A stretch of 64,000 nt of DNA. Origin: Dendrobates tinctorius. Taxonomy: Eukaryota. The position numbers and the translations under genes were made by a program. This document shows positions 20,084 to 36,530 of this stretch, one piece after another (position 1 is the first letter of the stretch; each line of letters starts with the position of its first letter). Below the pieces are notes generated by a model that saw nothing but the letters and a program-made list of their open reading frames with translations, ran no database searches and had not been told where the DNA came from. The stretch covers positions 123,938,001-124,002,000 of the forward strand of contig NW_027361679.1 of the NCBI RefSeq assembly GCF_039654945.1, given 5' to 3'.

Positions 20084-21097
20084 TTAAACTGTTTATCTGC
20101 AAAACAAATTCACAAAAAAAAAAAAAAAAAAAAAATCAACTATACCACCATATGAAAGTCTAAACAGTTCAATTTCAGTTGCAGATGACAGATTCCCTTA
20201 AAAAAACCTAACACTTAAAAAAAAAAAAAATTAACTTGTGAAAATCCCTGAACTCCCACTCCCCCCATGAATCTGCAGTTTGTGGAGGTGTTGCTCCATT
20301 GCAAAGACATTCTCATTTATTGTTTTGGAGTGAAATATGTGAAATCTCTGCCTATAGCCAAGCTGGGCATTTCTTCACTGTCTTCTCTAGGGGAATGTAA
20401 TTTTACCTCTCCCTACCAGACACTGCCAATCACAGGTCAGCAACTCATTTTGCAGTCTGTCTGATATGATGCAGAGTTGTGATTAGCTGAGCCTGAGAGG
20501 GAGGCGTGACACTGCGCTCTTACAGAGAAAACTGAAAAAATGACTAGTTGCACTACTAGCCGAGCTTTCACATATTGTGCTCCAAAAGCAATAAATGTGA
20601 ATATGTCTGCAATGGGGTGACGCAGATAGAAAGGGAAAAAAGTGGCAGGATCTAGGGAGAACAGGGCTGTACAAGGCAGGGAGCTTTTGTTTGCACAAGA
20701 GATGGGTTCTTTTAAAAGTTTAGGTTCAGTTTAAACATCCCTGATGTGGCAGTTAACACTGCATAACTCGACCTCTGAACAAAAGACAGAAGTTATGTAA
20801 GCTATCAAGTAATAAAAGTATTAGCAGCGATTTATTAGAATTTTAAAAGGAACCTAAACTTAAAGAGGTCATGAAAGTAATGTATTTCAGATTATACAAT
20901 AATTAAAAAAAATATAAAAAAATAAATATTATGAGAAGGGGCATTAATGTAGATGTTCAAAAATTTCAATATCAAAAACTGACTGGAACCCCATAATCAG
21001 ATCTGTTCCATGGCAGGTTATTTTTTTCCCATGCATGTGAATCCAACGGGCCTCCAAAATTGAGATGGAGGATCTAACGCTACCTACCATTTCTTAC

Positions 21098-21159
21098 CTT
21101 TTTATGTCCTTCATAGTGAGCTCAGATCCACTCGGACAATTTCACAAAGCAGGCATTTC
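21098..21159 (-). CDS. DAZAP1: DAZAP1 alternative 62-nt cassette exon encoding short C-terminus GNACFVKLSEWI* (stop 21122-21124)
   Basis: Acceptor ctctttccag, donor AAG|gtaaga. In phase 1 it reads G-N-A-C-F-V-K-L-S-E-W-I-TGA, matching the Xenopus Prrp C-terminus as I recall it. Confidence 0.85.
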
Positions 21160-21472
21160 CTGGAAAGAGTGATTTCTTCAGGCTTTTTAAGTGGGAGGGT
21201 TAAGGCATGCACTACAACCCCAACCTGACATCCCGCCCAGCCAGGTAATAGGCTTTTTGTGCATGGCAAGGTCAGACATGGAGCGGTCCACTCTGAAGTT
21301 TGGGTAGGACATGGGTGTCTTTGTTTTATACGAAGATGTAAGGAGATTACGAATACTTTTGAAAAGACATTGAACACAGTCAGCTGGTCACTGGGACATT
21401 TTTCAAGAGTCTTTGAAACCCACCCTCAAATGACATATCGTGGGACAAAACTTGCACAAGGACACCACTTAC

Positions 21473-26083: not shown

Positions 26084-26346
26084 TAACTGCTGAAACCTAC
26101 TCTAATCAAAATGAGCTATACAGAGCCCCATGACAATGGAGTGCAGGTTGAGAGTGTGCACCTACCCTCTATTCATTGTCTGCAGGATTTCTTAGCACAA
26201 TTTACTGTCTATTTCTGGCAGTAAAATTAAAAAATAAATAAAATGATGTAAACAGTCTGCCGAGGAGCTGATGGATTCATGATTCACATCTCAAGTTGTC
26301 CACCCACTTCATGATTGCAACATTTATATCCACGTAATAGTCTCAC

Positions 26347-26500
26347 CTTGCGGACTGTAGCTCTGTGGCCAAGTGGCAGGAGGCTGGCCCGTCCACCCAT
26401 TAGCTGCACTTTGCATTCCTCTACTTCCCCACTGATTAGAACCTGCAGATCCAAGAGTTTGGCTTTTGCTATCACGGGGTTCAGCTCGTTTTACTTCCAC
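26347..26500 (-). CDS. DAZAP1: DAZAP1 coding exon (approx. exon 8): end of RRM2 and start of low-complexity domain
   Basis: Translates VEVKRAEPRDSKSQTLGSAGSNQWGSRGMQSAANGWTGQPPATWPQSYSPQ(G). Acceptor tctttgtttag, donor gtgaga, 154 nt, phase 0-1. Confidence 0.97.
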
Positions 26501-26898
26501 CTAAACAAAGACAGAGACTGATCAGAAAATAGCTCAATAGTTACTGCCCACTCCCCACCCACTACACCCAAAATTATACTTATAAGCTTAGCATTCTAAT
26601 ACTTAATTTAATTAATCTTATATTAAAGGACTCTATATGGGTCTCTGAGAAGCTTAACATACACAGTATAAAGCAAATATATATCTTACTCTATGTGGAA
26701 AACTAGGGATTATTACTATAGCTCTAAAAAGAAAACACTCTCATCCGGACTGTAGGGCCGAGTCGGGACTGGACTTCGCTTCATGTGAATAGTAGTCTGG
26801 GCTCTCTTCTTATCAGAGAATCTCATGGGGCTGGGATACTGCTAGGGAGGCTGCTGATTGGCTGCGTCAAAAATAGCTAATGGAAGATAAAGACTTAC

Positions 26899-26991
26899 CT
26901 TCCCCAGGCTAACGCTTTAAGAATCTCAATTTAATTAACTCGCAAATAATGTCAGAGGGAATGGATGTGGTAAGAGAATCTTACACTATAT
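26899..26991 (-). other. Candidate 93-nt poison (stop-codon) cassette exon of DAZAP1
   Basis: Acceptor gttttgtttactttttttgttag, consensus donor AAG|gtaagt. Four in-frame stops in phase 0 (ATA TAG ... TAA ... TGA ... TAA). Confidence 0.65.
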
Positions 26992-28178
26992 CTAACAAAA
27001 AAAGTAAACAAAACATGCAAGTAATACAAAATGGACAGTTTGGTCAATAAGAAGCATATTCTTCATACTGTGTTGTTAAAGTTACATAGCAGTAGCAACA
27101 ATCCATCGCTTTGGTCTCACCCACATTTTTTTGTCTGTAAGAATATATTGGGGTCCTGTCAAGATCTTCTATTTGAACTATTGTGTGCTACAGACATACT
27201 ATATGAGACACCATCATAAAACGTAATCAGCAGCTGGAAACTGCATTACATGACTTAAAGCTTTCCCTTGTACTAGACAATTATATACAAGAGGAACATA
27301 ATTCCACAGTGAATCTTCATTTTCGGTCCTCCATTATTCAGACTGTATAGCAATCCATAGATAGAATATAAGAGGATGAGCGAGGCCCAGAGAAGTTTTC
27401 TTCTCTGTCCTCATTCTAACTAGTGTGTCCTCCATCAAATGATCAGACTAGCCAGCCAGTCTGAACAACAGAAATTACTATTTCAGGAAGTTTTAGAAGT
27501 CAGCGATGATAATAGTGTATCTCTCAAGGAATGTATCTTGTGCTAGTTTATAAACATCCAGCCTGGTGTGGCACTATTAGTTGTGCATGACCTGTAGCTA
27601 CAAATGGTAATTGCTCCTACGCAGTCTTCTCTAGCCACTGAATAAATTATGGGGAACCTACATATGAGCCTACACCACTATCGCTAACCCCTAACGTTAG
27701 CGATGCAAGACCTCTCAGACATGACAACACAGTATGAACAGTTCACTTTACTGCAGAATGGTTAAACTACTGAGAACATGGCTTTTGTACCAAAGTTTCA
27801 CAGTAAGTGACCCAGTAATGAAACAGTAACAGCATCCAGTCCTTCATGAAGTCTTCCATTTGCCAAATACTTTTTTCCTGTCCCCGTTGCATAATGAATT
27901 TGAAACCCCGTGACTTCAGAAGGAATGGCATCAAGCCAAACCTTAGGCAGCAGAGATGTCCTTGAGGACTCCATGACTTAGGAGCAAGAAGAACAGAACT
28001 AGCAATAACTGAATTTTACTGAGCATCCTTCCAATTTTTTAACATGAAACATTCCCTCTTCCTACTGGAACTATAAAATGCTCACATCCCCAACTTTTTA
28101 TAATAAGAAAAAAAAAAAAAACACAAAACAAAAAAAAAAAAACATCACTTCACCAAGGACATTGACTGCTCCCCAAGA

Positions 28179-28390
28179 NNNNNNNNNNNNNNNNNNNNNN
28201 NNNNNNNNNNNNNNNNNNNNNNNNNNNNNNNNNNNNNNNNNNNNNNNNNNNNNNNNNNNNNNNNNNNNNNNNNNNNNNNNNNNNNNNNNNNNNNNNNNNN
28301 NNNNNNNNNNNNNNNNNNNNNNNNNNNNNNNNNNNNNNNNNNNNNNNNNNNNNNNNNNNNNNNNNNNNNNNNNNNNNNNNNNNNNNNNNN
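28179..28390. other. Assembly gap (212 N), probable site of the missing RRM2 RNP1 exon
   Basis: N run. The expected GFGFITF...MGKK exon (phase 1-0) was not found by eye elsewhere between 26501 and 36530. Confidence 0.7.
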
Positions 28391-29914
28391 CTCAGCAGCA
28401 GGATTAGGGTATAGCAACTCCAGCCATAGTGAAAACAGCAAGCTGACTTGTAGACAAGTGGGAGAATTAATTAACCACTGAAAATCTGGTTACAATCATA
28501 TATGTCAGTAAAAGATCACTAGTCAAACATGGACAAAATGTCAAGGAATGGGAGCCAGAAATATCATTTTGTAAGGTACCCAAATAGAAACCATGTCATC
28601 TTGCTGCAAATGGCATCTGAGTGTACTTAGAAACTAGCATGTGCTGTGAAGTTGCTTGCAACTCTGCTGCTTCCTTCTTGGTGGCATTTTGCTTTGCAGC
28701 TAGTGCTGACAGCAGCCATACATATTTCTAAAGCGTTAAACAGATACAATATCTAACAGCTAAGGACTACCAAAGCTTTCCCAACACTGTTGGAAAAGCC
28801 CAGAGTCTAAACTGGAGAAAAAGCTATATGAATACACAAAGATACAGGCCAAGCTGAGATCCAGCAGGACAATTGTTAAATATTCTAAAGGTTTGCATTT
28901 CCCACTACAGCAAGTGAGGTGTAAACAAAGTATCAGTAGATGTGCAAATAATCTCCATGTAGACCATTCACTAAACACTGCTAAAACTGGTATGGAAGCA
29001 AAAACCTTTTCACCCAAACGAAGATCATGGTAACACTACTGTAAAGGCACCTTTCTGTTTCTGTATTACAGTCCCTAATCTTGGCCTGACAACAGTCCTG
29101 ATCATCATAAGGACCAAGAAATATGTTAGTTTGGATGAGGAGACCCACAAAGTATGATGCCTGTGAGAAATTGGTTTTAGATGGATTATTATCTGGGACA
29201 TCCAATCTACATGAGTATAAAGGAAGAAGTCTTATGGCTCTCTAGAGAGGGGCAAAAGGATAGAAACCAACAGCACTAAAAACGTTTGCAGAAAAGGTGT
29301 ATGAAATGTATAAAAGCCAACAACTAAAAGGTCAACAAATATGTACAACTCGATCATTCTTATCCTACGCTCACACCATCGTATATTTGATCCAAGTGCT
29401 TTCTGTGGAAAAGCTGAAAGCACTCGGACCAATGTTATTCAGACAGCTGTTGATACAACAGGTTTTTTTCGTTTCCCGGAACAAATGTCCTCCAAGAACA
29501 ATTTGCAAAACGCACTAGTCCCAAAAAATGGATCCCAAGTAGTCAACCGTATAGCATCAGAATTTTAGACATATTGTATTTCTTTAACCCCTTTACACCA
29601 TTTAGATATGGCATATGTTGTGTCCCTGCCTTTGATGTGGGCTAGCAAGCAGCCGCATATTTCCTTGCAGATGGTCGATTTTGGTCGAACAGCTGCAGGT
29701 GGAACAGAAATATGCCTACAAATGTTAACATGTTAAATACCACTGTCAATCTCTGAGTGTCAGATAACACACACCAATATGTAAGAAGGAGTTAGTGGAT
29801 GATCTCCGCGCTGCCGACAGAATTAAGACATATCCCAGTGTAGTAAAGTAAAATGGTTTTATTTTGACGCGTTTTGAAGTAAAGCTACTTCAGGAAAAAA
29901 ACACAACACATGTA

Positions 29915-35196: not shown

Positions 35197-35756
35197 TATT
35201 TAAATCATACTGACTGTACACTGTATAGTGAACATAGTAAACAAAAAAAATCGTGGAACTGCACTTTTTTTGCAATTTCAATGTAATTGGATTTTTTTCC
35301 CCACTTCCCAGTGCAACATATGATAAAATGAATGATGCCATTCAAAAGTACAACTTGTCTAGGAAAAAACAAACCCTCATACGGCCATGTGGATGGAAAA
35401 TTAAAGTTATGGACATGAAGGGGTTAACAGAAGACTATTTGTTACTGTAAATTTCAATAACGGTTGATGCATAAAAAACGGATGCTATACAAAGTGCAAA
35501 TGCATGAAAAAAATTATTTTACTAAATGAAAATTTGCAAAAATTTTGAATACTCATCTGACCTCTGCCTTAGAAGAATTCAACATGTCAGCTAGTATAGG
35601 AAGATTGTGAAAGAAGGGGGAAAGGTCTGTCTAAAAGTCACAGGTAAAGTTTAACAGCACAGAAATCCCTAAACATACAAAAACAGTACTGACACTTCAT
35701 TTACACCCCAAACATACAGCAGCACCCCCAGCTTATCTAACTAGACTGGCCTGTAC

Positions 35757-35778
35757 CTGAGTGATAGAGCTTAAACAC
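35757..35778 (-). other. Candidate 22-nt poison microexon of DAZAP1
   Basis: Strong acceptor ctctctagctttcttttctctag, exon GTGTTTAAGCTCTATCACTCAG, donor gtacag. After the phase-1 upstream exon it reads G|GT GTT TAA. Confidence 0.55.
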
Positions 35779-36530
35779 CTAGAGAAAAGAAAGCTAGAGA
35801 GATAACATTAATCACAGTCAAACAACAAACAGTTTAACAATACTTTACAGTAACTTAAAATGGATAGGAATGGGGGGAAAAGAACAAAACAAAATATGCC
35901 TTAGCTTAAAATGGAAAGGAACACTACTATAGATATATATATATATATATATGGCCTTAATGATGAGGTGAATAGTAGGACATTCAGATGGCAAACAATT
36001 TTGACAGCATGTATGAAGCAGGTAATGGATGTTCTGTGGCCAGCACCAGCACGTGACCTGGGCTCTGGAGAGGAACACCGAATTGGACAAAAGGAGACAA
36101 TGCATCCGACACACAATACAGAACACCCAGGATTCTGATTGGTGCACTGGCATTATTTCAGTAGGACCATACACGTGTAACAAAGGAAAAGTAAGAATGG
36201 CAGTTTGAAAAAAATACAGTTTATGTAAAAGTGAAACATGTCAGATGTCTGAGACACAAACGTCACAGCTTGCAAATGACCCAACATGCAGCACAAGGTA
36301 GGCTGCTGATTTTTTTATTTTATTTTCTTTGGAGTGAGGGAGCAATTTTAAGATATTCAAGGTCAATTTACAAATACAAACACATTTTCAATGCGATATG
36401 GAGCAAGCAATAACCCCTAAGAAGTGAAGGTAGGTAATGTGTGAAGCTCGGTCACTCAGAAAACTGTTTGCCATCTAAATGAGGAGAAGAATGAAAGATT
36501 GGAAAATAAGATGGATCAGAGTTTATTTAC

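Follow-up and report, generated by a model that had tools for sequence, protein, structure and literature searches.

Several genes encoding splicing regulators, among which TRA2B, members of the SRSF family and genes of the HNRNPL type, host poison exons, intronic cassettes which carry early in-frame stops and act through alternative splicing coupled to nonsense-mediated decay (AS-NMD). Poison exons evolve as non-coding DNA, are better conserved in nucleotide sequence than some coding exons, and the conserved region includes part of the flanking introns. A 93-nucleotide (nt) element sharing these features is found in a 64,000-nt stretch of the Dendrobates tinctorius genome (contig NW_027361679.1, positions 123,938,001 to 124,002,000; hereafter the window, whose first letter is position 1). 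The element resides in an intron of the gene DAZAP1, between the exon ending with …HDIMGKK and the exon starting with VEVKRAEPR. The DAZAP1 protein activates splicing, is expressed widely and is required for growth and spermatogenesis. Comparison of orthologous introns makes it likely that the element is a real cassette exon of this gene, unproductive (poison) and common to vertebrates as a whole. Differently from the poison exons mentioned above, the DAZAP1 exon is a putative one, and associates consensus splice sites with a predicted donor hairpin.

The DAZAP1 cassette also resembles the decoy exons of SF3B1 intron 4, SNRNP70 and OGT, which are highly conserved non-coding cassettes, residing in introns larger than 1 kb of RNA-processing genes. 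Human DAZAP1 has likewise been reported to contain a detained intron. The difference lies in the early stop, which is conserved in the DAZAP1 cassette, and suggests that ribosomes read the transcripts in which the cassette is included.

Layout and conservation of the candidate exon

The candidate exon spans positions 26991-26899 of the minus strand, as assessed by direct reading and by the orthologous exons found in seven other vertebrates. The upstream tract has pyrimidines at 17 of 20 positions, and the acceptor AG is at 26993-26992; tract and acceptor together (…TTTTTTTGTTAG) cover positions 26992-27013 of the minus strand. The donor, AAG/GTAAGT, matches the consensus MAG/GTRAGT at nine of nine positions, and GTAAGT and the conserved segment of ~22 nt ending with CCATTAG can be read directly in the window letters at 26877-26898, on the same strand. 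In phase 0 the exon has stops at codons 2 (ATA TAG), 19, 22 and 25, and both other frames are closed as well. Phase 0 is the relevant case because the downstream constitutive exon (26346-26500, minus strand; VEVKRAEPRDSK…SPQG, VEVKRAEPR at the start), which is entered in this phase, opens with GTG GAA at 26500. Direct reading confirms in these respects the initial annotation, which had called from the sequence both the 93-nt interval, with its pyrimidine-rich acceptor and AAG/GTAAGT donor, and the four phase-0 stops. It had correctly seen, too, that a stop is still met if the AG 6 nt downstream, which leaves the frame unchanged, is used as acceptor, and that the exon also stops when entered in phase 1.

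Judging from its coding exons, the host gene is DAZAP1, carried by the minus strand. When the DAZAP1 protein of the poison frog Phyllobates terribilis (P0034) was compared with the window over two variable exons, 50 of 51 and 57 of 57 residues matched, which points to a dendrobatid, or a very close relative, as the source of the window. Residues 157-183 of the same protein, corresponding to the exon which ends with …HDIMGKK, are exactly the part left unmatched in the window by tblastn. This constitutive exon is most likely hidden under a run of Ns at 28179-28390, as indicated by collinearity with Bufo, in which the …HDIMGKK exon lies between the blocks aligning to the two sides of the N run. 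From the exon under the N run to position 26501 the host intron measures ~1.7-1.9 kb, and not the about 3 kb assumed for the host stretch by the initial annotation. Across the species examined, its length ranges from 1.7 to 6.8 kb.

Taken alone, the splice sites and the stops of the candidate exon are within chance. Acceptors and donors of comparable quality number 53 and 5, respectively, on the gene strand of the window, and pairs spaced 40-250 nt are expected to occur ~0.9 times, with one observed. The other four perfect donors are apparently not located at coding-exon ends. Stops average 1.97 per frame in 93-nt segments of the host intron; 11% of the segments have four or more in a single frame, and in 70% no frame is open. 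Being packed with stops, as the initial annotation describes the exon, is hence the normal state of intron sequence. No repeat or transposable element copy of the candidate exon was found elsewhere in the window. With such figures, the element might be a chance pseudo-exon, i.e. a piece of ordinary intron endowed with good splice-site matches, in which stops are the default. Since splice sites and stops do not exceed chance, the case for a real exon rests on conservation.

Orthologues were reached by an exon-level protein search and one profile search, leading to full-length DAZAP1 proteins, and from these to gene loci. Seven orthologous loci were obtained, from Bufo bufo (L005), Aquarana catesbeiana (L006), Rhinophrynus dorsalis (L007), the lizard Podarcis raffonei (L008), the shark Heptranchias perlo (L009), the anteater Tamandua tetradactyla (L010) and the bird Eurypyga helias (L011). 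Comparisons of the window with single species covered positions 27096-26932, i.e. the acceptor with ~105 nt of intron before it, plus the 60 bases at the start of the exon; the 3' part of the exon, the donor and the post-donor segment (26931-26877) were compared among the seven orthologous loci only.

The region 27096-26932 is 95.8% identical to Bufo, 98.0% to Aquarana, 92.3% to Rhinophrynus and 88.0% to Podarcis, whereas the identity of coding exons in the same comparisons is 69-92%. Relative to the three frogs, it is the block of highest identity in the whole gene. Relative to the lizard, one short coding-exon match reaches 88.5% over 61 nt, but the 27096-26932 block still has the top bit score. 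The exon bases included in the block (26932-26991) match the loci of frogs and lizard at 88-98%. In turn, the Bufo island is 89.9% identical to the bird, 85.9% to the mammal and 81.6% to the shark sequence, each over ~200 nt. The whole conserved island, made up of upstream flank, exon and post-donor segment, corresponds to 26877-27085 of the minus strand in the alignment of the seven orthologues. Its edges are sharp: the alignment of the seven loci comprises ~80-85 nt upstream of the exon, the exon and ~22 nt after the donor, beyond which the flanks are unalignable. Averaged over all pairs of the seven species, identity is 0.886 in the island versus 0.744 in the downstream coding exon, and 59% of the island columns are invariant. 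Classical ultraconserved elements are defined by 100% identity over at least 200 base pairs (bp) in human, mouse and rat; the DAZAP1 island differs from these, being 81-98% identical across vertebrate classes.

In all seven orthologues the exon sits in the corresponding intron, flanked by the exons which end with …HDIMGKK and start with VEVK(R/K)AEP, and has the same architecture as in the window, a sense-strand cassette with a 3' splice site before it and a 5' splice site after it, within an intron of a protein-coding gene. The acceptor AG and the donor GTAAG are invariant in the seven, and the acceptor tract reads TTTTTTGTTAG in frogs and amniotes, and …CTGTTAAAG in the shark. The length of the exon is not fixed (93, 93, 93, 86, 86, 87 and 92 nt), and indels occur without regard to the reading frame. 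None of the three frames is open in any orthologous exon, and the opposite strand is closed in all frames too. All seven exons have the phase-0 stop at codon 2, as ATA TAG in frogs and as ATG TAA in lizard, bird, mammal and shark. Exon and flanks are thus conserved above the level of neutral intron, with the pattern of frame-breaking indels and stops in all frames proper of non-coding DNA. Such a pattern of conservation marks the island as containing a functional exon which is non-coding. According to the initial annotation, the lack of a conservation peak over the exon and its flanks would have spoken against the exon; the peak is there, as the best-conserved non-coding block of the gene, and splice sites and early stop are kept from shark to mammal.

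An identity of 81-98% over ~200 nt in eight jawed vertebrates, delimited by unalignable flanks and accompanied by the maintenance of splice sites and early stop, rules out that the element is a pseudo-exon arisen by chance, a hypothesis which retains a negligible probability. The candidate exon was not matched in the distant contigs L001-L004. The result is uninformative because these contigs hold only 566 nt of the intron, and in Bufo the exon lies ~1.1 kb upstream of the next exon.

Predicted RNA structures and motifs around the candidate exon

In the orthologues, the last 9 bases of the exon and the donor are predicted to pair with the invariant segment ending with CCATTAG, a hairpin which would mask the 5' splice site. 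At the seven orthologous loci the predicted stability is -9 to -12 kcal/mol, with z about -2.7, and 1-2% of the shuffled sequences are equally stable. Variation is confined to the loop. Similarly, short stems sequester the donor, and vary in the loop only, in the hairpins described at MAPT exon 10 and SMN2 exon 7 (TSL2); differently from these, the DAZAP1 hairpin is predicted only, and its stem is constant, hence devoid of covariation.

Introns of genes for RNA-binding proteins often host small nucleolar RNAs, and the island might correspond to a small RNA gene of this kind, or to a microRNA gene, embedded in the intron. Yet, Rfam gave no match at E up to 1 in 26932-28178, and the island folds locally in a weak and inconsistent manner, with z ranging from -0.2 to -2.3, which makes the hypothesis hardly credible.

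A second structure may involve distant parts of the intron. Box B (ACAACACAGTATGAA; 27062-27076, minus strand), at the 5' edge of the island, and box A (TTCATACTGTGTTGT; 27724-27738, minus strand), located 663 nt upstream of box B, would form the 3' and the 5' arm, respectively, of a long-range duplex. The complementary pair, TTCATACTGTGTT(GT) in box A and (AC)AACACAGTATGAA in box B, is present in all eight jawed vertebrates examined, at a distance which varies from 0.66 to 3.7 kb. The helix consists of 15-17 uninterrupted bp in seven of the eight species, and has one mismatch in 21 positions in Rhinophrynus. A perfect complement is equalled by at most 1 of 2000 shuffles, and complementarity between the two conserved intronic boxes is beyond chance in each species. 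The helix is extended in different ways, by GT:AC at one end in frogs, and by ATC:GAT at the opposite end in amniotes and shark. Substitutions found in Podarcis and Tamandua give rise to G·U pairs, and not to mismatches, and a 13-bp core is constant, bar one mismatch.

Two boxes in the same intron, 0.7-3.7 kb apart, forming a helix of 15-17 bp beside a candidate regulated exon, with UGCAUG nearby, recall the RBFOX RNA bridges and similar pairs of conserved complementary regions, intronic duplexes which control splicing over long distances. The DAZAP1 duplex differs in being predicted, and in having almost invariant arms, in which the sole signs of covariation are helix-end shifts and G·U-compatible changes. 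Box A is part of a second conserved intronic island (27712-27854, minus strand, delimited by alignment of the eight species), which is ~90% identical to Aquarana and Rhinophrynus, and contains in addition an inverted repeat (GGGTCACTTACTGTG … CAGTAAAGTGAAC). The ACTTAC part of the repeat resembles the 5' end of U1 small nuclear RNA, being the complement of GTAAGT.

A UGCAUG, the motif recognized by RBFOX-type proteins, is found at 27014-27019 (minus strand), 23-28 nt upstream of the exon, and is invariant in the window and in all seven orthologues. RBFOX-type sites located upstream of an exon generally repress that exon, and UGCAUG is for this reason a plausible repressor of the DAZAP1 cassette. 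Motifs of the GUUAG type are found at the acceptor, the AG of which belongs to a GUUAG at 26996-26992, and near the donor; these words are too short for significance. Sites reported for DAZAP1 include GU(1-3)AG and GGUUAG (PMC3834821), and the protein has been inferred to raise inclusion from downstream intronic positions (PMC13751310). Self-regulation of DAZAP1 through GUUAG sites is possible.

Conservation is extreme also in the coding exon which precedes the cassette. The orthologues of this 84-nt exon (GFGFITF…HDIMGKK; positions 23331-23414 in L005, 16814-16897 in L010 and 18032-18115 in L009) have, from shark to mammal, a mean nucleotide identity of 98.4%, with 81 of 84 columns invariant and frozen synonymous sites. 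Around it, ~60 nt of the preceding intron and ~32 nt of the following intron are nearly invariant. Its splice sites look weak in the orthologues, whereas the cassette has consensus sites. A pairing partner was sought for the near-invariant exon, and the idea was dropped because candidate sites were unrelated from species to species. At the other end of the host intron, beside the constitutive acceptor, TAAG repeats followed by a G-rich run (26501-26628, minus strand) are conserved as well. The segment 26628-26501 aligns with positions 446-580 of L001, a distant sauropsid-like contig, with z = 7.5 and none of 200 shuffles performing as well, and aligns with Bufo too. It may be a splicing-regulatory element adjacent to the constitutive acceptor.

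Long-range duplex, donor hairpin and the exceptional degree to which the adjacent 84-nt exon is conserved along with its flanks, synonymous sites included, could be viewed in a different way. The island might be a regulatory RNA element which is never spliced, and works as a platform for proteins of the double-stranded RNA-binding or hnRNP type which help the weak upstream exon; the splice-like ends would be enhancer sites for U1 and U2AF. The enrichment of ZFR on conserved complementary regions (preprint 10.1101/2022.06.15.495552) fits this scheme. Such a platform has, however, no need for both splice sites at exon-like spacing, and the full layout of an exon (tract, AG, 86-93 nt, MAG/GTAAG) is found in eight species. 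Neither does it account for a codon-2 stop kept by means of different codons, and a role as unspliced platform is on the whole improbable.

Predicted inclusion and decay, and possible intron detention

If the element is a poison exon, as favored here, its inclusion would stop the reading frame at the second codon, 87 nt before the 3' junction of the exon itself, and at least five coding blocks follow. A stop located well upstream of an exon junction marks the mRNA for nonsense-mediated decay, according to the exon-junction rule. In the DAZAP1 exon the distance exceeds the 50-55 nt limit, more junctions come after, and decay of the mRNA including the exon is therefore to be expected. A product escaping decay would end before the last strand of RRM2, and would also miss the whole proline-rich C-terminal domain. 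The initial annotation had imagined a homeostatic off-switch truncating RRM2. Conservation strongly supports the existence of a functional unproductive exon after …HDIMGKK, whereas the density of stops adds no support to it; control by DAZAP1 itself, the homeostatic part of the proposal, finds support only in the short GUUAG-type motifs.

An exon with consensus splice sites which is mostly skipped would need to be repressed, and donor hairpin and upstream UGCAUG are plausible repressors. Inclusion would probably be kept low, and adjustable, by the hairpin, UGCAUG and the long-range duplex with the second island, 0.7-3.7 kb upstream; the duplex could either present or hide the region of branch point and acceptor. 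The level of inclusion may be set by DAZAP1 itself, acting on the GUUAG-type sites, or by factors such as RBFOX or ZFR.

Some observations weigh against this interpretation. RNA evidence of inclusion was found in no species, and none of the sequencing runs holding the stretch is recorded as RNA. Similarly, no truncated product ending with …GKK plus I or …GKK plus M was found among DAZAP1-like proteins. As already said, splice sites and stops would not attract attention without conservation, and conservation, in turn, signals function but cannot separate inclusion coupled to nonsense-mediated decay from a decoy role. The arms of the duplex are nearly invariant, and support from covariation is thin, amounting to helix-end shifts and two G·U-compatible changes, with no clean double substitution. 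Finally, the arguments based on GUUAG and UGCAUG depend on words of 5-6 nt.

About 20 small runs (20-165 million letters each; among runs X1-X33), which come from 8-9 studies, contain the intronic stretch in full. They derive from the same species and from one diverged by ~1-2%. The small size of the runs, and their spread over many studies, suggest targeted sequence capture of a conserved element, rather than whole-genome or RNA data. Capture of this kind, in more than one species, might also be taken as a hint that the island is a DNA-level element, such as a transcriptional enhancer, in which exon-like features are incidental; deep, sharply bounded non-coding conservation is typical of developmental enhancers as well. 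Yet, what is invariant in the island are signals of the sense-strand RNA, i.e. the pyrimidine tract, AG, GTAAG and UGCAUG, which make no sense in an enhancer. Nor do two separate conserved sets of complementary segments, and a function at the DNA level appears very improbable.

Among the proteins inspected, P0145 was considered as a truncated product and discarded, because it ends with …GKKSGS, and no matching acceptor is present in the Tamandua intron. In P0252, a product called on a Logan contig, …GKK runs directly into the conserved start of the intron (VCSCSFILP), and the gene model P0148 from echidna has a similar tail, VYSCNFILP. The two tails suggest that the intron is read through, be it in transcripts or in gene models.

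The read-through product P0252 is among the observations in favor of a decoy role of the cassette. According to the decoy model, the splice sites of the intron ends are engaged by a cassette to which they are joined inefficiently, the intron remains unspliced and the transcript is confined to the nucleus. Output would drop without, or in addition to, nonsense-mediated decay. The model applies to highly conserved non-coding cryptic cassettes found in retained introns larger than 1 kb of splicing-factor genes (PMC6097662), a definition which suits a host intron of 1.7-6.8 kb. The coexistence of a weak-looking upstream exon and a cassette with consensus sites also speaks for a decoy. Moreover, human DAZAP1 contains a detained intron which is strongly bound by the double-stranded RNA-binding protein ZFR, and the reads of which increase upon loss of ZFR, alongside SNRNP70; the text of the study leaves, however, the detained DAZAP1 intron unspecified (preprint 10.1101/2022.06.15.495552). 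A stop preserved at codon 2 through different codons fits translation of the transcript after inclusion, and fits less well a pure decoy. A role as decoy is on balance unlikely, though a serious alternative; it overlaps in part with that of a poison exon, and the two could act jointly.

Poison exon, frozen 84-nt exon with weak splice sites, second island, duplex and donor hairpin might all be parts of a single conserved RNA-structure switch, able to choose among productive splicing, inclusion of the poison exon and detention of the intron. The switch would be read by ZFR-type and RBFOX-type proteins rather than, or besides, DAZAP1. This broader scheme is put forward tentatively, and is more doubtful than the existence of the poison exon. 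The age of such a switch would be roughly 450 million years, as estimated here from the split between sharks and tetrapods.

DAZAP1 in the window, and its possible control by unproductive splicing

As read by translation of the minus strand, exons of DAZAP1 in the window are located at 54550-54431, 36579-36529, 26500-26345, 22008-21742, 21632-21471 and 4166-3996. Other parts of the gene are conserved outside coding DNA. In the intron preceding that of the cassette, a 70-nt block (35747-35816, minus strand) is 80% identical between window and lizard, and falls inside a block of ~900 nt (36595-35663) which can be aligned among frogs. Upstream of the N run, an intronic block at 28622-28874 (minus strand) is 91% identical to Bufo and 80-86% to the other frogs; identity to the lizard is 70.6% over 231 nt. 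A segment which follows the proline-rich exons, 21060-21288 (minus strand), is ~83% identical to Aquarana and Rhinophrynus.

No description of a poison exon of DAZAP1, or of an RNA-structure switch as outlined above, was found in the searchable literature, though the exon may already be listed in supplementary tables or in gene annotations, for instance as part of a human or mouse transcript subject to nonsense-mediated decay. No description of how the level of DAZAP1 is controlled was found in the searchable literature either. The locus offers several experimental handles, as two splice junctions, a duplex which may be broken and restored, the donor hairpin and the UGCAUG site. A call made from sequence alone, and statistically unremarkable, proved real once orthologous introns were compared. 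If the interpretation is true, DAZAP1 would join the RNA-binding proteins which are controlled by unproductive splicing.
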